Shown: in pieces, positions 14,866 to 63,365 of the stretch
Numbering within the stretch: position 1 is the first letter of the stretch
Layout of the letters: the number at the start of each line of letters is the position of its first letter
NCBI GenBank assembly: GCA_964187785.1
Contig: OZ076420.1
Location: 53,258,001-53,322,000, forward strand
Reading direction: 5' to 3'
Source: Amphiscolops sp. MND2022
Taxonomy: Eukaryota
Length of the DNA stretch: 64,000 nt
The notes under the pieces: generated by a model
What the model saw: the letters and a program-made list of their open reading frames with translations, nothing else
Databases searched by the model: none
Told to the model about the DNA's origin: nothing
Program-made: the position numbers and the translations under genes

Positions 14866-14984
14866 TCTGAGAAACAGTTATAACCTCAGCTGAGTTGTTG
14901 AGAAAGCAAAATGTGATTAGATGATGATCGTGTCGGTAAAGAATTTTTTTTCGATTTTGTTTGAAGTAGGAACTGCAATGTAAC

Positions 14985-24874: not shown

Positions 24875-24899
24875 TTCTCGCTTTTTTTGGGGATATTTC

Positions 24900-34774: not shown

Positions 34775-34896
34775 ATGAGATTTAAATGTAGGCATGGAAT
34801 TATTTTACTTACAATCGCCGCAACAATCTTCGTTTTCTGCTCACTTCCTCCAGCTAAAGAACGTCTCGATGGAATCGCTATTCGTCAACCAAACAG
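34775..34896 (+). CDS. Candidate first coding exon of the GT61 glycosyltransferase gene (signal anchor)
   Basis: MRFKCRHGIILLTIAATIFVFCSLPPAKERLDGIAIRQPN: basic tail then hydrophobic helix. Acceptor ttttgtcag before 34771, donor AG|gtaagt. Linkage to the later exons is inferred. Confidence 0.6.
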
Positions 34897-35059
34897 GTAA
34901 GTTATTACTTTCAATTCAATCATTTTGCTACACAACAAGCAGTTCAAACATTTTTTAATGTTTCATCTTTTCTATGTAATCTACTATTTTATCGAAAAAA
35001 ATTGGACTTTTTTGAAAATTTATGAACAAACAGGCGATTGTTGATAGCGTTTGACACAG

Positions 35060-35276
35060 TGTATGTCTTGCCAAGCTCTTGGCAGTGTCAGAATGTTAGT
35101 GAAAATGCAGGATGAAGGATCACGTTCCACTCCTTCTCATTTTCTCCACCATACTTCTATTGTTCCCCATCTTTTTTGTTTTTCGATTTCTTCGCAACGT
35201 TTCATATCGACTCAATTCTGTTGGTACAGGCACCAGTTGATGGATCTTTGAAACTTTTGCTGTGATTTACACTGAC
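35060..35276 (-). pseudogene. Merlin (IS1595/ISXO2-like) transposase C-terminal remnant
   Basis: VNHSKSFKDPSTGACTNRIESI*NVAKK, then WWRK...DP...IFTNIL in a shifted frame; resembles the VNHS..F.DP.TG.hT..IES.W motif. Confidence 0.75.
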
Positions 35277-36039
35277 AAAAATTTATAGAAAGACTTTTCA
35301 ATATTAAACAAGCCGGGAACAGCCCAAGTCGGCGCCCCGCTCAAGGCACAAAAGTGTACCCGGTGAACGTGGTTTTAGTATCACTTGTTGGATGAAGATT
35401 TTACAAAATCCAAAAAAGTCTTATAGTACTGAAAACCTGACCCTAAAGCATTACGTTGACGAAAATTATGTGAAACTTCAGGGAAAATCGATAATGTTAT
35501 ACGAGAAATGAAAACGTTATATCCGAACTTTGAAAACGTTACATTTAAACTTTGTAAACGATATATCCGAACTTTGAAAACGCAATTTTCGGAAAAAAGT
35601 CACATAGTGCCAAACAAAACCAAAGAGGCGAGCGACTTTTTGGTCTTCTCAACTTTTGGAAGCATAAAAAATTTGTTGTTTAGTGCGAGACTGAACCCAT
35701 GCTCTTCTGCTTCTCAGACCCCAGAAGTCCGGGTTAACTTCTCGGCTAAGAAGCTGAACAAATGAACAAAAAAGTAGATCATTCCAGAGTGAACTGAAAC
35801 AAAACTACTCACTGTAATAGTCGGGGGCACTTTTCTCAGGAGAAGCGCCGACTAAAGATTAATTTTTTGAAATTATGTGAAATGTTTCATTGGATTTCAA
35901 TTGAGAGCAAATTAATTGCTAAAATAATACCATCTAGAAAAAAATGTGTGTGTGCATGGGGGTTTGGGTTGGGCTGTGAAGGCAAAAGTTCTGTTACAGT
36001 TTACTATTATCACCTTTCCGATGTTTATTGTGTTAACAG

Positions 36040-36185
36040 CCGACTCTTTGCAAAGCTTCACATATCAATTTCCAAGTCTGAGCCTTGCATCACTGTCAAG
36101 AAGGACAATCTCTCGCAAACGACGAATGCTCTCTCGTTCCGAAATGTCATGATCACTCAGAATAATGCAACTCTAGCAGCACAAG
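36040..36185 (+). CDS. Tentative internal exon of the GT61 gene (stem region)
   Basis: Acceptor tgtgttaacag; phase 2 matches exon 1; open frame RLFAKLH...ALSFRNVMITQNNATLAAQ. Donor position unresolved. Confidence 0.4.
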
Positions 36186-36508
36186 GCTCTTTTTTGTCCC
36201 AGGTTGTCCTTCAGAATTTGAAATGTGATCGAAACTGAACACATCATAGAAATTACAAAAAGTCAAGGTGATTTGTTCTCTGAGGGATGCAGAAGAAATG
36301 TTATGAAGGTTCCAAACTGTCAAACAATGGACATCTAATAATGACAAGAACTGTAGCTTCGCTTGAGTTTTTCAATGTGTTCAATGCGCTTTTAATTTAA
36401 TGAAGCGTTCAATGTAAAGAAAACATGTTTTTCGAAACTATAACAGCTAAAATGAAGAAAGTAGAAAACCCGCCTGTTAACCAAAAAGAGCCTTTAACTA
36501 CTCTACAG

Positions 36509-36597
36509 AATTGTCGTCTGGAAAATGGACATTTCACCGCGGATTCATGAAGGTTCTCTGCCCCGTTTTCAATTTCACCAGCGATTTCATTTCCCAG
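36509..36597 (+). CDS. Tentative internal exon of the GT61 gene
   Basis: Acceptor ctctacag; LSSGKWTFHRGFMKVLCPVFNFTSDFISQ; possible CAG|gcgagc donor. Phases to neighbouring exons unresolved. Confidence 0.3.
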
Positions 36598-37230
36598 GCG
36601 AGCAAACATCATAAAAGTTCGTTATCCAGACTTTTATTTTGACTCTAAACACAAATAAATAGTGTACAGTTAAAACCAGCCCAATACAATGGTTTGTCAT
36701 TGAGCTTCAGTCTCATTGTTAATATATCAATGCTGCCACATAATGGAAAAAATAGTCCTCATCACTTGCTACCAGACTACCAAAATCATGCTAGAAGTGT
36801 TTGGAAACCCAGCAGATTGAACTAGTGATAACCATTTTGGAAGCCTGCTCTACTGTTTGTCTTCTCTCGAAAAAAATTGAAGTCACTCTAGTTCAGATGG
36901 CGACGAAGAATGGATTTTTTGAGGTTGAATGCTACAGCAGAGCGAACTTCTCAGTGATAGCTGAGATCAGCATGTGCTAAAATAAACATGATTATGAAAA
37001 CATTTCCGCAAGAAAAGGGACCATGTTCCTTGTTTTCTTCCCACATACACTGTATTTGTTACCCACTTTCAGCAGTATTTTATATTTTAAAAAATAACGT
37101 TTAAAAAAACAGTGTATCTGGGGGAGGTAAAAGATATGGTGCTATTCAGGAATGTACTCTAAAGAGTTCGTGTTTTTGAAGCAGCTTTTAATTCACATGT
37201 AGCATGTGAAGTTTTGTTGTATAATTCTAG

Positions 37231-37407
37231 GTTTGCTGTCGACAATGCCTGTCGTGTATACCAACGGTACCAAGCAGTATCTTACCAAGTCAATCGAGTC
37301 GTGGACTACTTTGGAGTCGGTAGTGTTTGTGGTCAGAGAGGAATACGCAAACCCATACTGGGTGCTCATTGATCTCATCGACCTCTATTTGACCTTAAAC
37401 CAGTCAG
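37231..37407 (+). CDS. GT61-family glycosyltransferase exon (REEYAN motif)
   Basis: ttctag| ... |gtaagt, 177 nt, phase 1-1, only one frame open: ...SVVFVVREEYANPYWVLIDLIDLYLTLNQS. Resembles plant XYLT LLVTRFEYANLFHTVTDWY (recalled). Confidence 0.8.
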
Positions 37408-37572
37408 GTAAGTCATAGAATCTTCTTGGTCTCTCATGAAACCATGAAAATCATACCCAATTTCATGTACATGTGTCATCGCTGAAGTAAATCAAGGTGA
37501 TGTCCAACAGAAAACCGGGGTTTAGGTAGTATTGAAAAAATTGAATTTTATGAGAAACCAGCTGAGCTGTTT

Positions 37573-38290
37573 CCCAGTGTAAAATATCTTGAAACTCTTG
37601 GCAAGATCTTGGATTTTCCCGCAAATTCCCGTTACCTCTTGAAACCCTTGATAAGATCTTGTTTATTCTTGCTTGACACAAAACTCTTGAAATTCTTGAT
37701 AGGAATCTTGGTAAGAGTCTTATCAAGAGTGTCAAGAAAATTAATACTTGTAAAACAAACAACAATTTTGTTTACAAGTTTTTGCTGTTGTTCGCACTAC
37801 CAGCTACACTATCATTCTTTGAAGTATTGGATATAAGACAACACAAAGTATTGAAATTCAGAACATGATAGTTTGGTTGGTAGCGCGAACAGCCGTGGTA
37901 GAATAGGTACGCTGATCAAGCCGAAGTTGGCGTGGGTTTTTGTTTGTTTTCATTCACTTTTGTTAGCTTTTCTCTTGAAACTCTTGGCAAGATTCTTGGC
38001 ATTTCTTGCATTTTCCCGGATTCTTGGCAAGATTATTGGCGTTTCTTGGATTTTCTTGGATTTCTTGACAAGATTCTTGGTTTTTCCTGGAAGGTTTTTT
38101 GTACTAAAAACAATTTTTCTGCGTTTTTTCAGTCGAAAAAATTAGGCATTTTTCTTGAAGTTCTTGGCAAGATCTTGCAAGATCGTACATATTCTTGGCG
38201 CTCTTGGTAAGAATCTTGCCAAGATTCTTACCAAGGGTTTCAAGAATATGCAAGATTCTTGGCAAGAGTTTCAAGATATTTTACACTGGG
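37573..38290. mobile_element. MITE-like TIR element with CCCAGT termini and internal CTTGGCAAGA arrays
   Basis: 28-bp perfect inverted repeat cccagtgtaaaatatcttgaaactcttg; TT on both sides. Confidence 0.88.
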
Positions 38291-38375
38291 TTGTTACTGT
38301 TACTTGACTCGAAAAATTTGTAATAAACAATTTTAACCGGTCTCTTTAGTCTTGAATAATTGAAACTTTTGATAA

Positions 38376-39143: not shown

Positions 39144-39354
39144 TGTTGTCTTTCTAACTAGGTCTACATAAAAATAAGGTTTTCTAAAAAAGTATCTTTT
39201 CAGTAGCAAAGTATAAACTTTTCAACAGTATCTTTTTAACATAAATGGATGTAACAGTTTTACATCTAATGTTTGTAAACAGTAGACTGGTGTGTCTGCA
39301 ACCGAAATTCGGTAAAGGTCATGTTCTTTTAATTGACGGATGAACCGTATAACA
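39144..39354 (-). repeat. 3' LTR of Gypsy D
   Basis: Direct repeat of 44754-44963. Confidence 0.95.
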
Positions 39355-39509
39355 TTTCCCTTTCTCTCTCCGGGGTTTTTCAGGGGCTTGAAGATGTGTC
39401 GGGTAGCGTCATGTTCTCCGGCAAGAAGTCTTGCGGCTTTTGTGCAGTTTCCGGTATTGGCTTGGGTGTGCCCTTTGTTCGGGTCCAGTTTTGGCCTGTA
39501 ACATAAACA

Positions 39510-42500
39510 ACTTTTCCATACCCAAAAAGTTCCTTTATATGGTATACTACCGTATTTATTCGGTTTATTAGTGTTTCGGTTTGACCGTCTATATTTATTT
39601 TGAGAATTCTCACCCTGGGGCATTTCTCCATCGGTGTGTATTTGTATGACATCATTTTCGGGATCTGTTTGTATCGGAGCATACCGTCCATCTTTCTTCG
39701 ATGTGTCATATGTCTTTCCGGCATCTTCCGGCATTTCTTCATCATCTTCGTCTTCGTCTTCCGTCTCTGTTTCGGTGCGCTTTTTGTTTTGCACTATTCT
39801 CAGTTTCCCGTTTAGGATGTCTCTGAGGATTTCATCCCATTTCCCGTATTTGCCGTCAAGTCCTCGCAGGCAATGTCGATTCCTGGGCGTTATCTCAGCT
39901 GAGACTGCCGGTGCCGATTCTCTTCGGTGTTTTTCTCGCTCTGAAATAATGGATCCGAAATAAATTTTCGGTGTTGTATTTTTCCCGTGTCAGTTTTTAC
40001 GGTGTTCTCGGTTCCACTTACTGCGGTTTGTATTTTTGACTGGAATCTACCTTCTAAGGATTTTCGGTTATGTCTCTTTTCTAGAAATTTGAAGGGATAT
40101 CTAACTGAGCTCTTTTCTTCGGTGATTTTGACTCCGAAGCCAGTTGCCGTTCTTCGGTCTTTGTCCGGGCCATCACCATGTGGTTGGTGAATTCCCCGTC
40201 TGCGTCTCTACCGACATATATTGGTATTTTTGGCCGATTTGGTGCTGAAACGGACAGTTCTGACCATTTGGATAAGAATGATTTTCCGTCTTTTATTATA
40301 TTAGTTAGTTCCGTTCTCGGCTTTCGACCGTGATGTAATTCAAATGGTGTTTTCTTTAGTCCGGTGTGTATTGTGAACGGCATCACTTTTAATGCTCTAT
40401 TCACACCTACGGTTAGATTATTTCCGTCTTCCATATTAGCTAACACTAGATTTTTCACTGTTTGTATTGCTCTTTCTACTGTTCCGTTACTGGTATGCAT
40501 TCGCGGGGGGCAGTACTGTATTTCTATGTTTCGGGCTTTACAAAATTCTTTTTATTCGGTTGAAGTGAACACCCTCCCCCTTTATCAGATTTAATTTTTC
40601 CTGGAATGCCATATAAATTAAACTGATTTGATAGGAAACTTGTAACTTCTTTTGTTTCCGGTGTTTTACAAATTTTCGCCGTCGCTCATTTACTAAACCG
40701 GGCTATTGCAATTAGTATTTGGGGTTCGCCGTTTAAATTTTTATGATGTAGTTTTCCGGTAAAATCAATTTGTATTTCTTGTCCCGGTTCGGACAATTTT
40801 TCTAGTTTCCCGTACTTGTTTTTTGGAATTTGGTATTTAAGATTCTTACCTGTAGCTAAGCAGGCTGTACAATCTTTTACTCTTTGCTCGATATCTTTCC
40901 GCAGTTCCGGCCACCAAAATATCTTCGCGTCTGACAGCATTTTTGTTATTCCGGAGTGACCGAAGTGCAGATTTTCAATAAGACGTCTTCTCAAGTTGAT
41001 GGGAACGGCGATTTGATCGTCGACGAAGACTAAACCCCATCGGACCGAGCGTTTGTCGAATACCGCTCTATATCCTTCGGGCGCGGAGTCTCTTTCCTAT
41101 CTTCTCATGCTGGTCCGGACTCGTGTCATTCCCGGATCAATCGCCGTTTTGGATATGAGTGTTTTGAGGTCGAGCATGAAATTAAACTCTGCTTTCTTGA
41201 TGTTTTCTTCTGTCATCTTTTTATTCTCGGTGAGCCGGCCCCCTATGCGGTTTATTTGAATGTAGTGGGCTTCCTTGCCTTCTGTGTGGTATTTGCTGAG
41301 GTCAACGATCGGCAGGTTGTCCCCCCGCGTTATCACGCTATCTTCTACGGTGTCCATCGTATTTTGTTCAGCTTGCAGTTCCCCCTCTTCGGGTGCTTCC
41401 GGCTCGTCTTCTTCTTCTTCTTGGATTGGCCGGTATCCACCGCTTATTCGGTTAGCTTTTTGTATGAGCTCCGCATCTATCTCCGCAATCTCTTCCCGGC
41501 TTCTTTTGTTTGGTCTTGATGGTGTAAAAATCATTCTCTGTGATTGCGGATCGTACCGTCTTCTCATTGTTCCGGGCCTTGCTAGCGCTTGTCTCCTTTC
41601 TACTAGTCTCCGTGTTTCGGGGCTTTTGTTTCTTCTTCTTATTATCTCCATGATTTCTCGGGTTGCTCCCCAGTGGTATAAGTTTTCCCTGTTCCTTTTC
41701 TCAATGTCTTCTTCTTTCAAGTTTGAACTTGTCTTTGCGGTGCTAATTTCGGACTGCCAGGATGTGGTTTTCTCACTTTCGTTAATTTTGTTCACGTGGC
41801 CTTTGTTCTGAAATGTTCTATTTGCATATGATTGGTCGTTCTTTTGCTCATTTTCGCTCTCGGATGTATTCCGTTTTGTCTCGGTATCTTGTTTGCTGTA
41901 ATCGGATCGGCTGTCGAATAGCGAACCATATTTTGCGTTCAATTCCACTTGCTCGGTTAATATGTTAATGACGTATTCTTCGTCGTATTTGTCTTCTGTC
42001 GTTGCTCCCCCTACCGGATTTCTGCTGAGATAGTCGGTGAATTTCAAATTGCTGCTGCAATATGTTGAACTGCAATGTCAAAATGTGCCAGCCGATCTAA
42101 CCATCTAGTTAGTCTTGCGCTGTATTGATGGTTGCTTCAGTTCCTTTTTATTAGAGGTTCTAGTGCTTCATGATCCGTGTATAGGTGTACCTTTTTTCCG
42201 TACAGATAGAAACGGAACTTTTCCAATCCCCAAACTACTGCTAACAATTCGAGTTCGCCGATTGAATAGTTCTTTTCGGTGTTGTTTAAATATCTACTAC
42301 CGAATGCGATTGGTTTCAATTCCCCGTCATCTTGTTTTTGCCAAAGCGTAATGCCGAGACCGGTTTTGCTCGCGTCTGTCGTTACCATGTTATCTTTATC
42401 TTTTGCATAGTGTGCTAAGCATGGTTTTTCGGTCAGCATTTGTTTTATTTGTTTGAAATTATTTTCTTGTTCCTGTCCCCATATCCATGGTTCATTCTTC

Positions 42501-43809
42501 TTCAGTAACTTTCTCAATCTATCTGTCTTTTCCGATAGTTTCGGTAGGAATTTTGCTTATGATTGTATTGCGCCGAGGAATGATTTCAGTTCTTTTATAT
42601 TGTTTGGTGATTTCAATTTTTGTATCGCTTCAACCTTCTCCTCATTCGGTTTTATCCCGGATTCGTCAATTTCGTGTCCCAACCATTCTGTCTGTTTTAG
42701 GAAAAATTCCGATTTCCTTTTGCTCGCCCGGTAGCCGGCTTTTTCGAGTTTAGATAAAACATCGAATAGTTTTTTCTCGTGTTTTTGTCTACTTCCGCGT
42801 GTTACTACTATAATGTCATCTAACCATGCCGGTGTGATGTATTCCAGTGTTCAGTCTATTTTCTCCTGGAAAATTGTGGGAATATTGGCGAGTCCGTAAA
42901 ACCCTTTTTTAAATCTGTAGTATCCGCTGAATTTCGCTCCGGTGATTGCGAATACGCATTGTTGGCTTGTCTCTTCGGATAATTTCGTTTGTCCGTATGC
43001 GTAATCTAAGTCAATCTTTGACATGAATAATTGTAGTGTTCGTTCTCGTGTAATTTCCACCGATATTTGGTTTAGTAATTCCTCCATATTCGGCAAATTT
43101 GGTCTCCGTTTAATGCAGCTATCGTTTAATTTTCGGGAGTCCAATGCTATTTTCACTGATTTGTCGTTCTTTACCGTTATTACTACCGGTGATACGAAAC
43201 AGTCTTCATCCACGTTATTTACTTTCTCTAGATGTCCGGCTTTTCTAAATTTCTCTAATTCCCGCCCTACATCTTCTTGCAGGTGAAGTGGTATCGGTCT
43301 TGCTTTTTGTTTCACCGGGTAGTGTCCGGGTTTCAATTGTATGTTTATTTCGGTATCTTTTATTGTCCGGTTGTTTTCGAATAGGTCCGGGAACTTTTTA
43401 ATTATTCTCACTTATTTTCCGATTGGCCGGTTTCGGCCAATTGTATTTTACCGATTGTCAGCTTGATTCTTTTCATCCAGTCCATCCCCAGTAAGGGTGT
43501 TATGTCCGCTCTTTCGGTAATGAGTATTTCCTTTTTTTGATTGTTATTTTCGTATTCTATGTTTACCGGTATTTTCCCCCGGATTTTTACATCGTTCTTG
43601 TTTACATCTTGGTATCGGTTTGTTCTTTTCTGTATTTCGGTCTTCATGATTTGTTCGTCTAATGGCATTATGGTCACCGGTGATTCGGTATCGATGATAA
43701 ATTCTTTTGGTGTTCCGTTTACCTTTATTTTTGCCGTGTAATGTTTCTGTTGTTCTACGATGTTCTTTATTTCTTCTATGTGATATATGCTTTCATCGGA
43801 TTCACTCAT
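39510..43809 (-). pseudogene. Gypsy D pol, frameshifted
   Basis: IIDTESPVT (PR), IDLDYAYGQ and AWLDDII (RT), TTDASKTGLG and ELELLAVVWGLEKF (RH), HFGHSG...CTAC, QIDFTG, NGTVER (IN). Lower boundary approximate. Confidence 0.93.
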
Positions 43810-43879
43810 CGATTCGTTCGGTTCTGTTTCTTCTTCTTCGGTAAGTTTTCTCAGTGTTCGGTTGTTCTTTGTTCTTTGT

Positions 43880-44697
43880 TTGCATGCCCGTGCGTAGTGT
43901 CCTTTCTTTCCGCAGTTGTTACAATTTGATTCTAATGCTGGGCACTTATGTGTTGGGTTCCAGTTTGGTGCGTTGCAGAATCTGCATGGTCAGTTTCCCG
44001 TTGTTCTCGTTTTCGGTCTGGTTCCGAATTTCTCCATTCTCTGTATTGGTTCTTCTTTGATTATCTGGTTTTCTTTTGTTGTGATTAATGCTTCGGGTAT
44101 CGTATTTTTCTTGTTTTTCTTTTCGTATGTGTTTTGTTTAATCATTTCGATTGTTTTCTTCATCTCTAGGGTCTTTTCTTTCATTAGCTTGTCCCGTAAC
44201 TTCTTGTCGGTAATCGCTGTCATGTATTTGGATATTAAAAATTCTTCGGCTGAGATGGTTCCGAAATTGCATTCTTTTTCTATTTCAATCAGTCGTCTCC
44301 AGAACTCTTCAGGTGTTTCATTCTCCGATTGTTTCGCCCAAAAGAAGTCTCCTCTATTGTGATATGTGTTTCGTTTTGGGAGGTAATGTTCGGTATATAA
44401 CCGAATTAGGTCTTTGATTTTTATACTGTCCGGTTCCGTTTTGTACTCGGCCCGGGTTATCTGGTACAATGCTTCCGGTCCCACTCCCCAGATAAAGTCT
44501 TCTTGGATTTGTGCTTCTTTTTCCGCGGTACATCCGGTTTCTGTAATATCTTCCCCTTTTATTAATGGTGTGATGTCAATTTTGTGTTCTCGTTTGGTAA
44601 ATTGTCTAAATCTCTCCAACCATTGTCTCGGGGTAAATATTGGGTTTCCGTCTGATGCCTTTGCTTCTAGGTTTGGTACAATATTCTTTTCTGCCAT
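43880..44697 (-). pseudogene. Gypsy D gag (ORF 43990-44697 plus frameshifted zinc-knuckle region)
   Basis: WLERFRQFTKREHKIDI...YLPKRNTYHNRGDFFW; C..C......H.C knuckle codons near 43890-43985. Confidence 0.9.
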
Positions 44698-44753
44698 AGT
44701 TCCGGTTAAAATTTTCGGTTTGTTAAAGAAAAAAAATCTTGCTTACTGCGCCA

Positions 44754-44963
44754 TGTTGTATTTCTAACTAGTTCTAGAGAAAAATAAGGTTTTCTAAAAT
44801 AGTATCTTTTCAGTAGCAAAGTATAAACTATTCAAGAGTATCTTTTCAACATAAATGGATGTAACAGGTTTACATCTAATGTTTGTAAACAGTAGACTGG
44901 TGTGTCTGCATTCGAAATTCGGTAAAGTCATGTTCTTTTAATTGACGGATGAACCGTATAACA
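44754..44963 (-). repeat. 5' LTR of Gypsy D
   Basis: Followed on the minus strand by the PBS. Confidence 0.95.
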
Positions 44964-46432: not shown

Positions 46433-46613
46433 GTGTGGATCCCAAGAAGACAACAGTTATTTGGGGTGACAACCACACTTCCTCCGTGGCAGACCAGCTC
46501 TGGGACGCAGTGTTCAAAGCCCACTTGCAAGTGAGCCCCTTGGCTAAGAGACAACTCATATTTGCCAAACAACTCACGCTCAGACCAGACAGAAAACACA
46601 GCATTGTCCTCAG
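46433..46613 (+). CDS. GT61-family glycosyltransferase exon
   Basis: atctccag| phase 1 joins the 37231-37407 exon; VDPKKTTVIWGDNHTSSVADQLWDAVFK resembles XYLT PNRPHVVFVDGHC...EETWTALFS. Ends phase 2 at AG|gtggca (weak donor; gtgagc at 46531 is an alternative). Confidence 0.75.
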
Positions 46614-49069: not shown

Positions 49070-50478
49070 TGTAACGGCTGACTTAAATCTTAACAACGGA
49101 TTCAAGCTTGTGCCGGTCCTTGGTCCGTCCTGCTTTCCACTAGTACAGCAGGATTCTAGAATTTGAAAGGACTGTATATTCCAATTGGTCTGAAATAGCT
49201 CCACTAGCTAGCTATTCCTAACTTTGAGAATTTCAATCTCCAAATCCTCTTCGAACAAGACAATCTTGGTGAAAATAGTCCCAGCTATGACTAGATTCTG
49301 TCTTCAGCGCTCGACTGTGAAGAATTGAACGATTTAAATCTCAAGTTATTAATCAACTGTTCACTAGCGTAATTCAGAATTCGACTAACTAACTATTAGA
49401 ACACATTGTTTGCATAACAAACAATAACATCATTCGCATTTCTAAAGTTATAAAGCGTGAATAAAAGGTGCGATTAGGGCGTTTATGACCACCAGTCACA
49501 TGGGGGAACTATGTTTGAGGACTGTGAGGTTCAATTTATGATTATTGAACTTTTCAACAGATGAATGGAAAATCATCAAAATTGAGCATAGTTTCAAGAT
49601 ATAAATCATTAAGTATTTATCAAAAATATTATTAAGATGCTTCAGAGGGATATATGGCACCAAATTTTGGAAAACTTTAACTGAAGCACGCGCAATATGT
49701 GGGTGGAGTCAATCTTGACATTTATAAGGCATCGGAAGTCAAATCAGGCGATGTATTACATCAAATTTGACTACAAAACACATGAAATCTTTACATTTTT
49801 GCCAAGCTCAGATATAAACCAAAGTGAAACTATCAGGTGAATGAACCATGAATAACCTTTACAGTCTACTGAACTGAATTTATCAATAAAGTAAGAAGGA
49901 GGATGAAAAAACAGCACTTGATATAGAAATTATTGTTAAAATATGAGAATTATGCTATTTTTGTGGCTAAATAACGATTATTTCGCAACCCTACAAATAT
50001 CGTGTTGTGAATCAAAACATTCCAAAACACACGTTAGGAGATATACAGCATGTATAAAGCACTTTAGTAATAACATCGATTATAGGTATCACCAAAAAGT
50101 TACAATTATCTGTGTGTTAGAGTTTAAGCTGAGGACCGGTGCCGTAGGGCCACAGAAAATAATTTTTCGTCTGGGATTTGGCTGAAACTTGGTGGGTAGA
50201 TAGTCCAGCCAAAATGATTCGGCGACACTACAAAACTAGATCGCTAATCTCTACGTGACCTTAAGAATTACTGTTTCAAGGCTTACATAGGTCTAAGGGC
50301 CACATGGGTAATTTAACAGGTAAAACTACAAGTCTTCAACACATACCCATGGATCTTATTAGCAGCACTGATAGGGGTCTCTTAGGGCTCAATAATAGCA
50401 GTAATGACCAATTTTTTGAATAACTAAGAAGGTGAAAATTTTTCAAGTTTAGTGATTTTTCAGTGTTTGGCGCCAACA
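49070..50478 (-). repeat. 3' LTR of the BEL/Pao element
   Basis: Direct repeat of 57055-58463; about 18 substitutions, no indel seen. Confidence 0.95.
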
Positions 50479-53400
50479 TCGCCGGCCCTGTTTTCATCTC
50501 GAAAACACTCATAGAAGACTGGCGCCAACTTCACTGCGGGTCTTCGAAGGACTCCATCGCTCGTCCTGATCAATGCTGATCGAATGACGCCATCAGCTCC
50601 AGGGAACACCTCAGTCACTCGAGCCATCTTGTTCTCATGTCGTCGAACTGAGTCGTCAATCAGCCATACCAGATCTCCAACTTTCAGCACACGTTCGTCG
50701 TCAGTAGCCCATTTAGATCGCACATTCCACTTCGGAAGGTACTCTTTCGTCCATCTGTTCCAGATCATCTGATTGTATGCCTGAGCCACTTTGTACATTT
50801 TTCGACAGTCCACGTATCTGACCGAGTCTGGCATCAGCGGTTCTGCCAGCACAGTTCGTCCCAACAGAAAGTGATTCGGCGTCAGTGCTTCCAAATCTTC
50901 CGGATCGTCACTCACAGGCGACAATGGTCTGGCATTCAATGTTTGCTCAACCAAACACATTGTAGTTGTCAACACGGGCAAAGTCAGTCGTCGATTTCCA
51001 AGAATCGCGAACATAGCTTTCTTGCAGCTACGTACTAATCTCTCCCAAATTCCACCAAAATGCGGAGCTCCAGGGGGATTGAACTTCCAAATAACTCGTG
51101 AATTGGCCAGTCGCTTACACAGGGCATCACGATCCCATTCATTGAGGCACTCTCTAAATTCCCGAGCAGCTCCAACAAAGTTAGTTCCATTACCACTGAT
51201 GATTGTTTGGGGTTTGCCACGTCTAGCCATGAATCTAGTGATCGCCATCATGCATGCATCAGTGTCCAGGCCATTGACCACTTCTATGTGAACCGCTCTA
51301 GTGACCAAACATGTAAATAAACAACACCAGTGTTTCACTGGTCTACGCAGAACGGTAACTTCAAATGGGCCAAAGTAATCTACCCCAGTGTTCTTGAAAG
51401 GATATACATTACGCTCCACTCGTTCCTTTGGTAAATCAGCCATGTGGGGGTGAATCGGTCGCACTGCCTGCTTTCTGCATTTGACACACTTAGATTTGAT
51501 GCTGCGCAAAGCATTTCGTAGTCCAATAACCCAAAGTCGTTGTTGAACCAGGCTTCTCACATACTCTGTTCCCTCATGGTGGTTGTCTTCATGCATTTGT
51601 ATCAACACTAGAACCACTGCGGGATGCTTGGCTGAAAGTAGAATTGGATGTTTCAAATCATCACTAATTGTTGCTTTGCTCAATCGACCCTTCAACCGTA
51701 TTGTGTTGTCACTGTCAACAAATGGGGAAAGTTTTGCCAAGTCATGCTTCACTCTCTCTCCACTGTTGTCTTGAAGTTTACTGAATAATTCAGCAAAACT
51801 TTCGCGTTGAGCCATTTGCAAGATCAATAACTCGACCTTCTGTCTCTTCAATGCTGTCACAACGCCACGTTGTTTTGATCTAAGTCTAAGACAGTAAACA
51901 ACCGCGTTAATCATTCTCTTGTATTTACTGAACCTTGACCAATCTATGACGCTCTCCGTTGGATTAGTCACCAAAACAATGTCGTTTTCATCCATCAGCT
52001 TCGCTTGCTCTGGCCAGCTTCCTGGGTTCTGTCTAAGCCAGGCCGGCCCATTTAGCCATTCGCTTTCAAGCAACTGGGACACCGTGACCCCTCTTGTGCC
52101 AATGTCTGCGGGGTTCAATGTGCCCTTCACATGCCTCCATTCGTCCACAGTAGACTGATCCAATATTTCTCCGACTCGGTTGGCCACGAACACTTGCTGT
52201 CTTTTATGTGCAGAGTGTAGCCATTGGAGAACCGTCATAGAGTCTGTCCAGTGTGTAACTGTCTGGATCTGGATGTCGTGGTCTGCTGAGATCAACTGCC
52301 TCAGTCTCACAGAGTAGAGCGCTGCCTGCAACTCCAACTTCGGGATCGTCTGCTGCTTCATTGGGGCTATCCTGCACTTCCCAATGACGAATGACAATTC
52401 CACTCCATCATCATCTTCTGCTCGCAGGTAAGCCACTATACACATTGATTCCAGAGAAGCATCTGAGAAAATATGCAAATCCATTTTCTTGTAACGTTTG
52501 TCAAAATATCGTCTTTCCAAGGGCATGTTTTTCAACTCCGCTAGTTCTTTCACCCAATCCAGGAACTGCTGTGCGTCTTCTTTCTCAATTTTGTCATCCC
52601 ACTGTTGTCCACTCTTAGCCCAAATCGTTTTCAGTAGGATGCGCATTCTCATTGTGAATGGTGCAAAGAGTCCCAACGGGTCAAACACTGATGCCACGAA
52701 GGAAAGCACTGCCCGCTGTGTTATCTTGATGGGTACTTCCTTGTCAGCACCACGACACACTTCCAGAGTGTCATTGTCCACATTCCATTGCATGCCCAGA
52801 AGCGATGAAGTGTGAGGCTCTGCTTCAAATGTTTTGCCTTTTGCCTCCGATCTATCCTGCTCAGGAATACTTCTCGTGACCACATCGTTGTTGCAAATCC
52901 ACTTCAGCAAATTAAACTCTCCCTTTCGAAGAGTTGTCCTCACATCTTGATAGACATGCACAGCTTCTTCCACTGTGGCCACAGATTTGGCAAAGTCATC
53001 CATATAGAAGTTTCTTTTGATGGCCTTTGCGGCTATCGGGTGACTCTCTCTGTTGTCCACGCCCGCTTGGAGAAGAGCATAATTAGCACACGTCGGACTA
53101 CTTTTGGCACCAAAGACGTGCCTTGTATACTCGTAGACGCCGATCTTGTCTTCAGTGTTGCTTCTCCACAAGAATCGTGGCACTCGGCACTCTTGTGGTG
53201 GCACTTTCACTTGCAGAAACAGTGCTTCTATGTCCGCACTCAAGGCAATTTGATGTTCTCTGAATCTGAAAATGATTCCCACTAGACTTTGTAGCAAGTC
53301 AGGACCTGCCAGGAGCATGTCATTCAGCGACTCTCCCTTGTATTTAGCTGCTGCGTTGCATACGCGTCTGACCTTTTCGGGTTTGTGGGGGTTTATAACT

Positions 53401-54530
53401 GGATGATGCGGCACATACCACTGTCTTTCGTCTTTGGTTTCATCCAGCTCCTTTTCGTCTAGCTTACGAACATAGCCATTCTGCAAGTCCACATTAATAG
53501 TCTCTTCATAACGTTGCTTGAGAGGCTCGTCTTTCTCGAGTCTTCTTTCCAATGAACAGAACTGCGAATGTGCCAAGAAGTAGTTGTTTTCAATAGTCGC
53601 CTTGTCTTCTGCCCACGGTAGTCCAACTTCGTAGCGACCATCAACAAGTCTTGTTGTCTTCTCTAGTTGCTCAAGAGCTCTTTTGTCTTCTCTTGAACGT
53701 CCACTGACATTCACTCGTGTAGCGTATGACTCCATGCTGAACCAGGACTTCAATTGCCTTCCCAGCTCGTCTTCACATACAACATAGCTCGTCGCTGCTA
53801 CCTGCGCCACTTCATGTTTTGGTAGTGGGCCACTTAACGTCCATCCAAGTTTTGTTTTGACAGCCCAGGGTTCATTCCGTTTGCCTTTCCTATACTCAAC
53901 AGGGAAAAGCAAATGATAATTGTCTTGCCCCAGGACCACGTTGACTTTCTTCAGATCCATACTGTTATCGGGCAAAACATCTAAATGGCTGTACTTTCTT
54001 TCCAAGTTGTTATAGTCATAACACTTGTTCCCAAGGTTCATTGAGGGGTGAACGTGGAACATCACCAACTCCGACACATTCGGAGTTGTGACCTTGATTC
54101 TCACTTTCTCGCTGGCCATCTCTTTTGTTCCGTTAATGCCAGCAATGTTCAGTGTCAGGGCCTCTCCTTGGACATCCAACTGGTCTCTGATGTCCTTGTC
54201 TACAAATGAGAGCGTCAACCCAGTGTCACAAATGGCCATCGTTTCAATTGATGTGTTCCCATTCGAGAGCGTGATTGGAACAATTTGCAAACTCCCAGTA
54301 CACGCGTTTGCTGTCATCACTGCATCGGCATTGGTTGTCTCATTGCTCCTACTGTTTTCCTTTTGACACTTAGGTTTGTTGTCGTCACCGTGCAAGAGTC
54401 TGTTATGCTGCTTGCTACATCCATCTTTGCCACACGTTCGATTGGCTTTACACTGACCAATCCTGTGACCAGAGCCCAGACAAGAAAAGCACAAATTGCA
54501 TTTCTTGACGGCATCGTGTCTTTCGGACAA
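50460..54530 (-). CDS. BEL/Pao polyprotein, C-terminal 1356 aa (zinc knuckles, protease, RT, RNase H, integrase)
   Basis: CFSCLGSGH...C, ICDTG, LAGPDLL, SADIEALFLQV, FYMDD, HIFSDAS, IPKLELQAA, GVDYFGP, GGIWERLV, LTPNHFLLG. The listed start is a frameshift artefact. Confidence 0.92.
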   Translation of the reverse strand: MSERHDAVKKCNLCFSCLGSGHRIGQCKANRTCGKDGCSKQHNRLLHGDDNKPKCQKENSRSNETTNADAVMTANACTGSLQIVPITLSNGNTSIETMAICDTGLTLSFVDKDIRDQLDVQGEALTLNIAGINGTKEMASEKVRIKVTTPNVSELVMFHVHPSMNLGNKCYDYNNLERKYSHLDVLPDNSMDLKKVNVVLGQDNYHLLFPVEYRKGKRNEPWAVKTKLGWTLSGPLPKHEVAQVAATSYVVCEDELGRQLKSWFSMESYATRVNVSGRSREDKRALEQLEKTTRLVDGRYEVGLPWAEDKATIENNYFLAHSQFCSLERRLEKDEPLKQRYEETINVDLQNGYVRKLDEKELDETKDERQWYVPHHPVINPHKPEKVRRVCNAAAKYKGESLNDMLLAGPDLLQSLVGIIFRFREHQIALSADIEALFLQVKVPPQECRVPRFLWRSNTEDKIGVYEYTRHVFGAKSSPTCANYALLQAGVDNRESHPIAAKAIKRNFYMDDFAKSVATVEEAVHVYQDVRTTLRKGEFNLLKWICNNDVVTRSIPEQDRSEAKGKTFEAEPHTSSLLGMQWNVDNDTLEVCRGADKEVPIKITQRAVLSFVASVFDPLGLFAPFTMRMRILLKTIWAKSGQQWDDKIEKEDAQQFLDWVKELAELKNMPLERRYFDKRYKKMDLHIFSDASLESMCIVAYLRAEDDDGVELSFVIGKCRIAPMKQQTIPKLELQAALYSVRLRQLISADHDIQIQTVTHWTDSMTVLQWLHSAHKRQQVFVANRVGEILDQSTVDEWRHVKGTLNPADIGTRGVTVSQLLESEWLNGPAWLRQNPGSWPEQAKLMDENDIVLVTNPTESVIDWSRFSKYKRMINAVVYCLRLRSKQRGVVTALKRQKVELLILQMAQRESFAELFSKLQDNSGERVKHDLAKLSPFVDSDNTIRLKGRLSKATISDDLKHPILLSAKHPAVVLVLIQMHEDNHHEGTEYVRSLVQQRLWVIGLRNALRSIKSKCVKCRKQAVRPIHPHMADLPKERVERNVYPFKNTGVDYFGPFEVTVLRRPVKHWCCLFTCLVTRAVHIEVVNGLDTDACMMAITRFMARRGKPQTIISGNGTNFVGAAREFRECLNEWDRDALCKRLANSRVIWKFNPPGAPHFGGIWERLVRSCKKAMFAILGNRRLTLPVLTTTMCLVEQTLNARPLSPVSDDPEDLEALTPNHFLLGRTVLAEPLMPDSVRYVDCRKMYKVAQAYNQMIWNRWTKEYLPKWNVRSKWATDDERVLKVGDLVWLIDDSVRRHENKMARVTEVFPGADGVIRSALIRTSDGVLRRPAVKLAPVFYECFRDENRAGDVGAKH

Positions 54531-54549
54531 CTTTATCTTCTTGAATGCA

Positions 54550-56931
54550 TCACTGCCAAAATTTGTGTTCTCCGTCTTTCAGAGGGCACTGCGTCTTCGT
54601 TGGTGAGCCAGAATCACTTGTTGCTGCAAAGCTCGTGTTCTTCGTCTTGTCTTTTGTGAAGTTTGACTTCGCTTTGTCAGCACTAGAGTCAAATTGCAAG
54701 CGTATGTTCTCTTGTACTTGCGCAATGTTCTTGAGCCATGCACTGAAGACTCGCATATTCTTGTAGCTCCTGTCGCAACGTTGCAAATACGTCATCCACT
54801 TGTTTTTGAGCTCATTTGGCAACTTTCTGACGGCGCTGTTTAGCACTGATTCCGAGGAAATGTCGCTTTCATATCCAAATTGGGTGAGCACATTGACACA
54901 TCCAGACACCACTTGAGAATACTTCACAATTTCTAAAGAATCATGCGGTTTGATGAATGGATAAGCATGAATCGTTCTCAGTTGCGCATATACAACCAAC
55001 TCAGGTCGCCCAAAATCATGTGTCAGAGTCTGCCAAGCAACATGGTACATTTGTCCAGAGTAGCCCATGCCTTCAATAGCTGCTTTAGCTTTCCCAGTTA
55101 CCAATGTTTTGAGATAGTTCATCTTTACACTGTCGGCCACTCCAGCTTGATCAACAGTGGCCAAGAACTGACCGGACCATTCTGGCCATTCCAATGGGTC
55201 TCCAGAGAACTTGTCCAGAACCATTTTTGGCAACTTCATCGGCACTGACACTGACGGCAAAGCGGTCGGCGTTGGGGTTGGCTGCATCGTTGATCCAAGC
55301 ACATGGTTTGGCGCTGCGGCTTTGGCAACACCAACAGATTTATTACTAGGCACAAACACAGTTGAATCGAACTTCAGCTCCCTCTTTGGCTTGACATTGG
55401 TAGTTGTCCAGGGTGCATTTTGCATCAATGACTGTTGCAGTTTAGCATCAGCCTGCCTCGATGAGCATGGCCTTTCACTGTTGCAGGCCGCCTGAGGTTC
55501 ATCCTCGACCTTTGTCTCCGCCTGAGGGCCAAATTTATTCTTTGGAGAATTGACCCATGTACTCGTTTTGACATTCTGAGAGCGAAACGATCCACTGATG
55601 GTAGACCCGCTACCCCTTAAAGATGCTTGATCCATAATTTCTATTTTCTTCAGCTTCAGGGACAATTTCTTATCTCGTTTCAGCTCTCCAAGCTCCATAG
55701 CCTCTTTTTGGGCTTCAAGTTCCATTTCCATTACCATTTTTCTCTGCTTGCGTCGCAGTTCCAACTCTTGCTCCTTTCTTTCAATCTTAGCTCGAGATTC
55801 ATCTTCGGCGATTTCAGCTTCCAACTGCAAACGTCGTCTAGAAGACCGTGACGATGCGGTCGAACCTTGGGCGACATTTAAGGCCCCAAGAACATCCGCG
55901 GGGACTTCTCCTCTAAAAGGGTGTTTCTGAGGTGAGACCACGCTTACGCCAGTAGCATTCGAATTTCCATCTGGAGGTATTTGAGGCGCTTTCACCTCTT
56001 CCTGAGTGCTAGCAGAAGCAACATTACCTTCCACGTTGTTCTGGTTCTCTACTTGCTTCCCATCTTCAGTCTCACTTGTCTCATTATTTGTCATCATTAG
56101 TGATGTTTCAGTAGTTTCGACGGGGTCTTGAACATTGTTTGAAAGGGCACCTCCCTTTTCTATACCCTCCAAATATTTCAGCCATTTCTGGGTTGCTGAC
56201 AGCCAACTGACTTCATACCCCTCGTATAGGTTTTGGCGTTGTATTGCTCCCGACTCATTTAAAAGGCTCTTTTGGTATCGACAAACATCCTTGGCTTCTT
56301 CCATGGTGTTGAGAAACCCAAGTGTTGACGTCCGTATTTTTGCAGACCGACCTCCATTTTCAATTTGGTCTTCTATTTGCGAAGTTGTCTTCTTCAGTTC
56401 AACGATGTGTTGATTAAATTTTTCTTCATGTTTACAATAGGTTACGCAAGAAGACTTCTGCTTTAGGTGCGTATAAACTGAGCCAAGCCAAAACAACCCA
56501 GTGTTCGTTGTGGTCCATTTTTTCGAGGCGTCGTCTAGTAGCACATACACGGCTGACTGCAAACGTCGTTGTTCATCTACGGCTTTGGACTTCAGCATCT
56601 CGTTGCCAACTTGGTGCAAATCCGTCAATCTAGCCCTCAGATCGTGATACTCATGGTACAATTTTCCCAATTCACTGAGTTTTCCTTCTTCCAGCCATTT
56701 TGTTCCCTTTTCGAATTGTTTCACAACGACATTCAAATCCAAAATTGTTTTTTGTAAAGCTTCTGCATGATTTCTCCATTTGACAAGATCCGTCGATTTT
56801 CGTAGGTCTTTGGAGCGCTTGGTATCCGTGTACCATGAAACATCAAAGTCGATCTGAGTCTGAGTACTCATCGTCCTGACGTCCTCGTAACACGAAGTCC
56901 AATGAGTGTGGAAGATATGTGGCAGACGCAA
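54550..56931 (-). CDS. BEL/Pao gag region, 793 aa
   Basis: KLPKMVLDKFSGDPLEWPEW...KMNYLKTLVTGKAK...AWQTL (Pao gag-type domain); separated from pol by one frameshift. Confidence 0.9.
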   Translation of the reverse strand: MRLPHIFHTHWTSCYEDVRTMSTQTQIDFDVSWYTDTKRSKDLRKSTDLVKWRNHAEALQKTILDLNVVVKQFEKGTKWLEEGKLSELGKLYHEYHDLRARLTDLHQVGNEMLKSKAVDEQRRLQSAVYVLLDDASKKWTTTNTGLFWLGSVYTHLKQKSSCVTYCKHEEKFNQHIVELKKTTSQIEDQIENGGRSAKIRTSTLGFLNTMEEAKDVCRYQKSLLNESGAIQRQNLYEGYEVSWLSATQKWLKYLEGIEKGGALSNNVQDPVETTETSLMMTNNETSETEDGKQVENQNNVEGNVASASTQEEVKAPQIPPDGNSNATGVSVVSPQKHPFRGEVPADVLGALNVAQGSTASSRSSRRRLQLEAEIAEDESRAKIERKEQELELRRKQRKMVMEMELEAQKEAMELGELKRDKKLSLKLKKIEIMDQASLRGSGSTISGSFRSQNVKTSTWVNSPKNKFGPQAETKVEDEPQAACNSERPCSSRQADAKLQQSLMQNAPWTTTNVKPKRELKFDSTVFVPSNKSVGVAKAAAPNHVLGSTMQPTPTPTALPSVSVPMKLPKMVLDKFSGDPLEWPEWSGQFLATVDQAGVADSVKMNYLKTLVTGKAKAAIEGMGYSGQMYHVAWQTLTHDFGRPELVVYAQLRTIHAYPFIKPHDSLEIVKYSQVVSGCVNVLTQFGYESDISSESVLNSAVRKLPNELKNKWMTYLQRCDRSYKNMRVFSAWLKNIAQVQENIRLQFDSSADKAKSNFTKDKTKNTSFAATSDSGSPTKTQCPLKDGEHKFWQ

Positions 56932-57054
56932 ACGTCCAAACTACCACGATGATGAAGATATGTGGCAGACGCAAACGTCCAAACTACCACAGTATCGGTT
57001 CAAAGTTGTAACTCGTCTTCAACTTCCAGACAGCGTCCGGGTCGGCGGACCAAA

Positions 57055-58463
57055 TGTAACGGCTGACTTAAAACTTAACAACGGATTCAAGCTTGTGCCG
57101 GTCCTTGGTCCGTCCTGCTTTCCACTAGTACAGCAGGATTCTAGAATTTGAAAGGACTGTATATTCCAATTGGTCTGAAATAGCTCCACTAGCTAGCTAT
57201 TCCTAACATTGAGAATTTCAATCTCCAAATCCTCTTCGAACAAGACAATCTTGGTGAAAATAGTCCCAGCTATGACTAGATTCTGTCTTCAGCGCTCGAC
57301 TGTGGAGAATTGAGCGATTTAAATCTCAAGTTATTAATCAACTGTTCACTAGCGTAATTCAGAATTCGACTAACTAACTATTAAAACACATTGTTTGCAT
57401 AACAAACAATAACATCATTCGCATTTCTAAAGTTACAAAGCGTGAATAAAAGGTGCGATTAGGGCGTTTATGACCACCAGTCACATGGGGGAACTATGTT
57501 TGAGGACTGTGATGTTCAATTTATGATTATTGAACTTTTCAACAGATGAATGGAAAATCATCAAAATTGAGCATAGTTTCAAGATATAAATCATTAAGTA
57601 TTTATCAAAAATATTATTAAGATGCTTCAGAGGGATATATGGCACCAAATTTTGAAAAACTTAAACTGAAGCACGCGCAATATGTGGGTGGAGTCAATCT
57701 TGACATTTATAAGGCATCGGAAGTCAAATCAGGCGATGTATTACATCAAATTTGACTACAAAACACATGAAATCTTTACATTTTTGCCAAGCTCAGATAT
57801 AAACCAAAGTGAAACTATCAGGTGAATGAACCATGAATAACCTTTACAGTCTACTGAACTGAATTTATCAATAAAGTAAGAAGGAGGATGAAAAAACAGC
57901 ACTTGATATAGAAATTATTGTTAAAATATGAGAATTATGCTATTTTTGTGGCTAAATAACGATTATTTCGCAACACTACAAATATCGTGTTGTGAATCAA
58001 AACATTCCAAAACACACGTTAGGAGATATAAAGCATGTATAAAGCACTTTAGTAATAACATCGATTATAGGTATCACCAAAAAGTTACAATTATCTGTGT
58101 GTTAGAGTTTAAGCTGAGGAGCGGTGCCGTAGGGCCACAAAAAATAATTTTTCGTCTGGGATTTGGCTGAAACTTGGTGGGTTGATAGTCCAGCCAAAAT
58201 GATTCGGCGACACTACAAAACTAGATCGCTAATCTCTACGTGACCTTGAGAATTACTGTTTCAAGGCTTACATAGGTCTAAGGGCCACATGGGTAATTTG
58301 ACAGGTAAAATTACAAGTCTTCAACACATACCCATGGATCTTATTAGCAGCACTGATAGGGGTCTCTTAGGGCTCAATAATAGCAGTAATGACCAATTTT
58401 TTGAATAACTAAGAAGGTGAAAATTTTTCAAGTTTGGTGATTTTTCAGTGTTTGGCGCCAACA
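57055..58463 (-). repeat. 5' LTR of the BEL/Pao element
   Basis: Adjacent to the PBS at 57037-57052. Confidence 0.95.
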
Positions 58464-58499
58464 CACGCTGTTGAATATGAAAGGGTATAGAAAATTGAG

Positions 58500-60850: not shown

Positions 60851-60892
60851 CATCAGGATTCAGAAATTTCTGGTAGCAGATACATATGTATC

Positions 60893-61322
60893 CCCTTATG
60901 TATTTGGGAGTACAGCTCCGCTGCTTGAGCTTTTATCATTTTTGAGAATGGAATGTAGAGGAAGCAGCATCAATTGTCACGCTGCCAACAAAGCCGTTAC
61001 CGAAATTTGTTTTATTTCAGAATCCAATTTAAAGTCCTTTTTTTCTGCTTGGACAGTCAGTGCTTCTATCCCCAAATCCTCAATTGTTTCTATCACCAAA
61101 TGAAAACGGACGCGAACGTGGACGATCATTGGGTAACTTCTGATTGAACCAGATGAGGATTTCATTGAAGAGAGCTCTGGCCTGGTACCGTCACAACTTT
61201 CAAATGCAAAACTTCCAATGAAAATTTTTCCTACAGCATTTCATCCACGATGCTCAACAACGGAAGCAATGGACTCAATATTTCCCAAAACGATAAATTT
61301 TCCATTCGTCGAACATGATTTT
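60893..61322. repeat. Unclassified dispersed repeat, copy 2
   Basis: Close match to 48550-48980. Confidence 0.85.
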
Positions 61323-61587
61323 ATATATTGCTATACCTGTATAATATATATAGAGAGAGAGGAGGGAGAGAGAGAGAGTGCTCGAGGGAGTAAATAGAAG
61401 CATATAAACGGAAGAAAGGAAGAGTCATGAACGAAACGACACACACTGTGACAATGAGAGGGCACAGTAAGCAGTACGCATCTACCTACAGCAAAAAGAG
61501 ATAGTACATACCAAAAGTGTTGATGATCAACACCATGACCAATCAAATTCAAAGAAAGAAGCGGAACCGCTTTTCTGGGGGAAGAAT

Positions 61588-62245
61588 TTGTTCAATTTGC
61601 GAGACAACAGGATTCTATTGTAAACCTTGATAGTTTACGGCCAACGTGTGGCGTGCTCCGAACGTAAAATTGATTACGAATTGCGAAAGAAAGTTTTCAG
61701 AAGCTGTAAGCTCAAATGTAATTGTGCAATTTGGCCCCGCAGTTGAGTTTTTCTCATGTTCGATATTTGAATGTAGAGGAAGCAGCATGAAGAGTCCGGC
61801 TGCCAACAAAACAGTTACTGAAAAATTCCTTAATTCTTGTTCAAGAAAAAATTGTTTTTCTTGGAAAGCGCTTCTATTCGCAAATCATCAATTGTTTCAT
61901 CTCCAAATGAAAACAAGCGAGAAGGTTGACAAACATGATTGATTGGGTAACTACTGATTGAACCAGATAAGTAATTCTTGAAAAGAGCGCCGACCTGGTA
62001 CCATCACAACTTTCAAATGCAAAACTCCCAATAGCAAAACGGTTCTTCAACGTTTCACCCACAATGCTTAACAATGGAAACAATTGACTGAAATGTTTCT
62101 CAAAACGACAATTTTTGCATTTGTCGAATTTGATTTTCTCTGTTTAACTTGATTTTCCTGTTTTTTGTTTGTGTGAAATTTGAAATTCTACCTGTCGAAT
62201 TTGATTGTTTCTTTGCTTATTCGCTGTTGAATTTGAAAACTACAT
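61588..62245. repeat. Unclassified dispersed repeat, copy 3 (more diverged)
   Basis: Colinear motifs tgtagaggaagc, gctgccaacaaa, cctggtacc.tcacaactttcaaatgcaaaact, ttgctta..cgctgttgaat. Confidence 0.8.
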
Positions 62246-63196
62246 TGTCAAATTTGAATGTGCGGATGTTTAATTTGAATTGCAAAACGTACAATTGGTA
62301 TGAAATTGTACTATGATCCATTTAGGGTTGAAACAATTGACAAATAAAAAACAACGAAATATACTGAACATTTGACATCTCATTGACATTTTTTCTCATA
62401 TTGACATTTCTCAAGCTCAACTTTCAATGTTTTTTCAACTTTTAACATCTGCTACTCTTCAAAATTATATTATTTCTAAACAAGGTACCGAAACAATTTT
62501 CTTTCCGTCGATCATTGCAGATGAAGCTTTCTTACCTAATCAATAATGCATGAAATAATTAAGTCTCGACCAGCAAAAAGTCTGTTCGGATGACGGAAAA
62601 AGTCGATTAAAGTCGCATTTGAACCACACCCTCCATATCCGTAAAAACTTCCAGTTTTGCACTGCCCGAGTACAATGAAGTTTTAGTTTATCGCGTCATT
62701 GATTCACCGGTCATTTTTCACGATCAACCGGTTAAGCAAAAGTTTAAATTGGGCTCAAGCAACGAAACTTCCGAATAACATCAAGTGGAACCATCATTAA
62801 AAGTATTGAGTCTTCAATAGTCATTTTGTTATGCCTGACCTTTCGAATGATTGACAATAATGCTGGGAACTTTTTACTTAAAGGTGGCAAACAAATTTAT
62901 AACCAAGTGGTCTGAAAATGGCTGGTTTGAAAGTGTCACAAAGACACAGCAGTTTGACTGTCCACCGCTGCTATCACTTTATGTAGTTTTCTCTGAGCTA
63001 AAAGCCTAATGAATTTGGTTGGAGCATGTCATCAAAAAGCTTGGGTTGAAAGATGAGTTTGAGGCTCGATATCGCCCCATTTTGAAAATATTAAAACAAA
63101 TTGAGTTCCCAACTCAAAACTTTTCAGTCGACTTGAAAGGTTTTTGCTTTTTTCAAATGTTTTCAAAACATCATTTTCTGATAAGCCTTCTTCCAG

Positions 63197-63365
63197 AAAA
63201 GAGTTCGACATGCTACCACCAGTTTATGGGTTCCGGCATTTGGTTTACAGTAACCTGGGCCTCATGCCCAATCAATTCAGTTGCGACGCAATTCGAGTTC
63301 TGGTCGTGTGGAGACGCGATTACGTCAACCACCCAGGAAACCCGGATGGCAGAATTGACAGAAAG
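63197..63365 (+). CDS. GT61-family glycosyltransferase exon (WRRDY..HP motif)
   Basis: cttcttccag| phase 2 joins 46613; KEFDMLPPVYGFRHLVYSNLGL...IRVLVVWRRDYVNHPGNPDGRIDRK |gtgagg. Resembles XYLT NVLFVRREDYLAHPRHGGKVQSR (recalled). Confidence 0.82.

Follow-up and report, generated by a model that had tools for sequence, protein, structure and literature searches.

What does an animal genome encode on the forward strand of a 64,000-nucleotide stretch of Amphiscolops sp. MND2022 (assembly GCA_964187785.1, contig OZ076420.1, positions 53,258,001 to 53,322,000), hereafter the window, in which all positions are counted from the first base? A sequence-only reading had joined three short exons, 37231-37407, 46433-46613 and 63197-63365, into part of a family GT61 glycosyltransferase resembling plant beta-1,2-xylosyltransferase (XylT), with a signal-anchor exon at 34775 and with introns filled by transposable elements. 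The answer that we reach, and hold with about even confidence as a whole, is that positions 34775-63365 (+) carry the first six exons of a real and conserved GT61 gene of the XylT clade, likely a diverged paralogue whose chemistry has been altered or lost.

Homology to the XylT clade of GT61

Each of the three quoted peptides matches the + strand exactly at these coordinates. They join in frame, and their exons have canonical AG acceptors and GT donors: 37231 (ctag/G) to 37407 (CAG/gtaagt), 46433 (ccag/G) to 46613 (CAG/gtggca), and 63197 (ccag/A) to 63365 (AAG/gtgagg). At the window G+C content of 38%, open reading frames (ORFs) of 56–60 codons are common by chance; by our own arithmetic, a single 26-kb strand of this base composition should contain approximately 38 ORFs of at least 56 codons. 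Because chance ORFs of exon size are this frequent, homology, rather than open frames and splice dinucleotides, was the real test of the gene.

True XylTs were collected by scanning the JGI metagenomes with a degenerate DNA pattern for FEYAN(L/F)FH. The scan returned 66 loci, many with plant or moss XylT exons, together with several stop-free full-length ORFs. The product of one locus, L069 (534 residues, conifer-like), is 79% identical over residues 240–534 to the Cryptomeria beta-1,2-xylosyltransferase RCN11; among its matches listed, 120/120 carry the Pfam domain PF04577 and many are named beta-1,2-xylosyltransferase. A XylT profile hidden Markov model was built from 88 proteins, comprising 84 plant XylTs and the products of L069, L056, L052 and L070, and was run, with its filters disabled, over all ORFs of 15 codons or more in the six frames of the window (2,667 ORFs). 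The ORF of exon 63197 ranked first (E 0.027, profile positions 345–394), that of exon 37231 second (E 0.5, positions 225–252), and that of exon 46433 fourth (E 2.5, positions 259–284). All three are on the + strand, in an order collinear with the profile; the chance of three ORFs named beforehand falling within the top four is, by our own calculation, ~1e-9. The third rank went to an ORF at 26850-27029 (E 1.5, positions 105–132), which, being 8 kb ahead of the conserved ATG exon, was rejected as noise rather than taken for an upstream exon.

The joined peptide scores 26.6–33.1 bits (p 1e-10 to 1e-12) against the same profile. Smith-Waterman alignment of the peptide of these three exons (exons 4–6 of the gene model below), scored against shuffled sequences, gave z = 17.7 with L069, 14.3 with L070, 11.2 with L052 and 9.6 with L056, and exon 63197-63365 is the top tblastn match of both L056 and L070. 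In the protein atlas, PF04577 is present in 29/100 of the clusters nearest to exon 37231-37407, and in 97/100 of the nearest named clusters for a piece of its orthologue. On the strength of the profile, the alignment z-scores and the atlas, this locus is established as homologous to the XylT clade of GT61, as the earlier reading had proposed. The three motifs that it had named for plant XylT do occur, in the order it gave, in genuine plant XylTs. The N-terminal 126 residues of the window protein have no detectable similarity to XylT.

A six-exon gene model and its relatives

The earlier exon list was incomplete, lacking two conserved exons at 36040-36185 and 36509-36616. These came to light through the relatives of the gene. 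A phmmer search with exon 37231-37407 against 1.84 billion representative proteins found only two, P0001 (74% identity) and P0002 (66%), both of them ORF fragments from ENA metagenome assemblies. P0002 sits on a 277-kb ENA contig (loci L001, L003 and L004), and L001 contains orthologues of four exons of the window, in the same order and with equal phases at introns 1, 2 and 4. A homologue search with P0002 matched only P0002 itself, a JGI metagenome scan with the alignment of the 37231 exon found no match, and a literature search on the motif strings found no relevant paper.

All six exons lie on the + strand and join into one open reading of 301 codons, free of frameshifts and stops. Exon 1 (34775-34896, 122 nt) opens with an ATG and encodes a basic tail, MRFKCRH, followed by ~18 hydrophobic residues, the pattern of a type II signal anchor; it ends in phase 2 at the donor CAG/gtaagt. 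The signal-anchor assignment is upheld by the distant relative, where the counterpart of this exon (L001 8933-9019) has the same phase and the DNA around the start is conserved as well. A direct junction to 37231 did not survive, because the phases do not match; exons 2 and 3 lie between. Exon 2 (36040-36185) contains a conserved Cys and the motif FRNVMITQNNAT with a conserved sequon, and is matched in tblastn to L001 9284-9451 (E 1e-8). Exon 3 (36509-36616) encodes GKWTFHRGFMKVLCPVFNFTSDFISQASKHHK, has the donor AAA/gttcgt in phase 1, and matches L001 10109-10189 (E 1e-7).

Exon 4 (37231-37407) encodes a strand, VVFVVR, and then EYANPYWVLID, in which N-x-x-W-x-x-x-D stands for the N-x-x-H-x-x-x-D of the family; the exon also has the conserved sequons NGT and NQS. 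In both relatives (L001 and L002), exons 3 and 4 form a single uninterrupted ORF, and the spliced junction of the window, HHK + S + LLSTMP, is residue-for-residue collinear with it. This collinearity confirms the exon 3/4 junction and makes intron 3 specific to the lineage of the window. Intron 3 (36617-37230) has the 3-bp repeat GTT at both ends; a transposon origin was considered for it and rejected, as there are no terminal inverted repeats and the end repeat is only 3 bp long. Against the two relatives, the ratio of nonsynonymous to synonymous substitution (dN/dS) of exon 4 is 0.08–0.15 with synonymous sites saturated, which indicates purifying selection across a deep divergence. Three N-glycosylation sequons are conserved, NAT, NGT/NSS and NQS/NQT, and fit a protein predicted to be lumenal.

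Exon 5 (46433-46613) encodes TTVIWGDNHTSSVADQLWDAVF, which matches XylT fvDGH....W.alF. Exon 6 (63197-63365) encodes the helix GFRHLVYSNLGL, the strand RVLVVWRR, the XylT-type insert DYVNHPGNPDG and RIDRK, which holds the second Arg; it ends in phase 0, and no further exon was seen in 63366-64000. Two in-frame joins of these exons are available. The long form, that of the earlier reading, pairs 46613 with 63197, where the first AG follows the pyrimidine tract; the short form pairs an alternative strong donor after 46530 (CAA/gtgagc) with the second AG, at 63204. On the plant-heavy XylT profile the short form scores 33.1 bits and the long form 26.6 bits, a difference that arises because GFRHLVYSNLGL can mimic XylT CFRHALLTPLGY. 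Three lines of evidence favor the long form as the probable transcript: i) exon 6, taken by itself, aligns its GFRH...GL with FGEM...FGL, the helix ahead of the RR strand; ii) the long form aligns over 146 residues with L070, a compact relative, its only gaps being two of one residue each; and iii) it separates the 'CF' strand from the Arg strand by 58 residues, a spacing that is at least 55 in the XylTs, EOGT and POMGNT2 seen. The short form leaves 29 residues there and needs the second AG, and we retain it as a minority model, considerably less likely than the long form.

Taken together, a model for the encoded protein can be proposed. The window part would code for the signal anchor with a short stem behind it, for the N-terminal Rossmann-like half and, of the C-terminal nucleotide-binding half, for the first strand, and the product would be a type II membrane protein facing the lumen of the Golgi or the endoplasmic reticulum, in keeping with its three conserved sequons.

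UDP-binding residues and a missing histidine

Given a GT61 protein of this clade, can it transfer xylose? In GT61, an Asn-Arg-Arg 'constellation' binds uridine diphosphate (UDP), comprising N245, R372 and R377 in EOGT (PMC13123520). The His of the N-x-x-H motif is reported to be invariant across the family, the EOGT mutant H248A is strongly impaired, and H166 of POMGNT2 is the proposed catalytic base (PMC13123520). L069 matches the crystal-structure sequences of EOGT (9WJK, E 3.9e-6) and POMGNT2 (7E9J, E 0.011); after correction for construct offsets, XylT N-L-F-H aligns to N-M-Y-H of EOGT (N245/H248) and N-L-M-H of POMGNT2 (N163/H166). In the corresponding window segment, N-P-Y-W-V-L-I-D, the Asn is retained, as is the Asp at +7, and Trp takes the place of His. 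ANPYWVLID is identical in the window, P0001 and P0002; the XylT alignment has His at this position in 88/88 sequences. Both Arg positions are retained, in WRR and in DRK, the register of the second being uncertain by one residue, so that all three members of the UDP-binding constellation are present by alignment to XylT. Between the two Args, the window protein reads RRDYVNHPGNPDG where XylT reads RREDYLAHPRHKG, and, with REEYAN and D-N-H...W, these clade motifs match those of the plant and high-GC relatives in a gap-free alignment. From these residues, the protein looks able to bind UDP and looks devoid of the presumed catalytic base.

These residues bear directly on the earlier proposal of a core xylosyltransferase, which stands as to clade and becomes doubtful as to activity, since the invariant His has given way to Trp in the window protein and in its two relatives. 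An active Golgi core beta-1,2-xylosyltransferase, moving xylose from UDP-xylose onto the beta-mannose of N-glycans, would account for the type II anchor and for the retention of R-x-EYAN, D-x-H, W-x-a-F and the RRDY-x-x-HP-x-x-x-G insert between the UDP-binding Args. We nevertheless consider it unlikely, given that all three species have Trp for a His that is universal in the XylT alignment and whose Ala mutant cripples EOGT (PMC13123520), that identity to plant XylT is low, and that the only sequencing runs found are DNA. Conservation of the protein argues for altered function rather than decay. A more novel reading, to which we give clearly less than even odds, is a conserved animal lineage of XylT-derived GT61 proteins that exchanged the catalytic His for Trp and kept Asn-Arg-Arg; its members would be pseudo-glycosyltransferases that bind UDP-sugars or glycans in a lectin-like or regulatory role, or transferases using another base or acceptor. 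On the preferred reading, the window protein probably still binds a UDP-sugar and acts on or binds glycans; instead of a standard core xylosyltransferase it is most likely a diverged paralogue, with its transfer chemistry altered or lost.

Several observations weigh against this reading of the locus. The role of His as the catalytic base of XylT is itself presumed. The HGAG motif and the C-terminal half of the protein lie beyond the window, which ends at base 64000. Searched singly, the exons and orthologue pieces gave no meaningful match in Pfam (at E ≤ 10), NCBIfam, PHROGs or the PDB, and in the PDB no window exon matched EOGT or POMGNT2. The Pfam part of this result counts neither for nor against the gene: PF04577, with 137 positions, matches only the C-terminal part of the three real XylT-clade proteins scanned (L069 399–483, moss-like L056 384–512, L052 276–369), a region that starts about where the window ends. 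As the window holds only its first stretch and almost all of it lies beyond, a Pfam check of this 5′ half, as proposed with the earlier reading, is blind.

Also on the unfavorable side, neither an orthologue of exons 5 and 6 nor a C-terminal exon was found by tblastn or the XylT profile in the 27 kb downstream of exon 4 on the contig of the relative, and a homologue search with exon 6 found no match in the protein database. With ORFs of this size so frequent by chance, exons 5 and 6 could be chance ORFs or parts of another gene, leaving only exons 1–4 real. This we judge highly improbable: against the XylT profile the two exons rank fourth and first of the 2,667 ORFs, their strand, order and profile positions are all as they should be, they join in frame, and the alignment z-scores of 10–18 depend on them.

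The remaining adverse points concern expression. The search for RNA runs yielded four runs of one sample, all DNA, whose contigs cross the introns at flat depth; transcript evidence was thus absent from the runs found. Intron 2 has a GC donor, AAG/gctctt, with a poor intron side; the homologous place in L001 has GT (AGAG/gtacag), and no variant at 36186-36187 was present in the four DNA runs. GC-AG introns can be functional. Together with introns of 9 and 16.6 kb that contain long terminal repeat (LTR) elements, one of them young, and with the absence of any annotated or transcript-derived match to exon 4 among the 1.84 billion representatives, the altered donor would suit an unexpressed or decaying relic, still open and mis-spliced through the GT-to-GC change and the transposon-swollen introns. 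A relic is improbable in our view, less so than chance exons and more so than an active xylosyltransferase: all six exons are open without frameshift or stop, exon 4 is under strong purifying selection in three lineages, and this genome normally has large introns filled with transposons. We keep to a conserved gene with diverged chemistry as the preferred reading.

Known GT61 proteins and the surrounding repeats

Compared with plant XylT/RCN11 (GT61; L069, L056, P0005-P0124), the window protein shares the type II layout, the motif order (R-x-EYAN, D-x-H....W-x-a-F, the helix F..h....GL, the RR strand, DY..HP...G and the second Arg) and an insert of equal length between the UDP-binding Args. 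It differs in the Trp that replaces the invariant His of N-x-x-H; in its much shorter stem, which places the motif at approximately residue 165 rather than 258; in the segment from the 'CF' strand to the helix ahead of the Arg strand, which is 20–45 residues shorter and equals that of the compact high-GC L052 and L070; and in its host, an animal. High-GC, intron-free genes of the XylT clade were encountered in soil-type metagenome contigs (L052:733-2025(-), L070:994-2121(-), L016 and L050). They contain the full motif set of RFEYANFFH, DGH, REDY.AH and HGAGL, and have a compact linker like that of the window protein; a scan with L052 of 185,579 bacterial and archaeal reference genomes found no match.

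With the animal GT61 proteins EOGT (9WJK) and POMGNT2 (7E9J), the window protein has in common the N-x-x-[H]-x-x-x-D segment, with its Asn, and the two UDP-binding Args; unlike it, these two proteins lack the XylT-type DY..HP insert between the Args and keep the His. The helix that follows N-x-x-W (37375-37400) reads DLYLTLNQS and, judged by eye, is nearer to mouse EOGT NLYLTQHVNNS, where LYLT likewise precedes an N-x-S sequon, than to plant XylT WYSAYVSSRV. The sequon in this helix is kept in all three species, and the N263 glycan of the EOGT segment is structurally important.

The locus had been put forward as the best candidate for new biology, which overstated its novelty. By 2014, XylT-like DUF563 genes had been noted in schistosomes, in other worms and in molluscs (PMC4122909); these putative invertebrate XylTs (Schistosoma Sjp_0055390 and Smp_125150, and those of molluscs) are, like the window gene, animal DUF563/GT61 genes resembling AtXYLT, a likeness that we draw from their description only (PMC4122909), and none of them has had its biochemistry characterized (PMC6935376). 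As of a 2019 review, no animal core beta-1,2-xylosyltransferase gene had been characterized (PMC6935376); snails and schistosomes are known to have the activity as well as the xylose epitope, which is allergenic and antigenic (PMC6935376, PMC4122909). XylT-like animal genes are thus already known, and the one distinctive feature here is the conserved His-to-Trp change, which offers a natural test of the His as the catalytic base of GT61. The locus also adds a deeply conserved and poorly sampled animal branch to the XylT clade.

The description of the introns as filled with transposable elements proved correct for introns 4 and 5. Within intron 4 (9 kb), an old Gypsy-like LTR retrotransposon occupies 39144-44927 (-), with LTRs 94% alike and with aspartyl protease and reverse transcriptase–RNase H domains; the element resembles transposon ORFs in L001. 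Antisense within intron 5 (16.6 kb) lies a BEL/Pao LTR retrotransposon, 49070-57354 (-), with the Pfam domains Peptidase_A17, RVT_1, DUF5641 and DUF1759. It has an open gag-like ORF of 793 residues, a pol ORF of 1356 residues, and 300-nt repeats, its LTRs, that are 99% identical and 7,985 bp apart; by these features it appears young and is possibly intact. Intron 1 contains a very high-copy short repeat at 35300-35900, in which the word depth of DNA run X1 climbs to ~4e5 versus ~95 in the flanks; its many alternative internal joints suggest an abundant, variable small element resembling a short interspersed nuclear element or a miniature inverted-repeat transposable element. Upstream of the gene, at 13863-25952, an LTR retrotransposon whose integrase and reverse transcriptase–RNase H ORFs lie on the minus strand occurs in tandem with a period of 5,600 bp; its internal part is present twice in nearly identical form and a 198-nt repeat three times, which suggests an LTR-internal-LTR-internal-LTR array.

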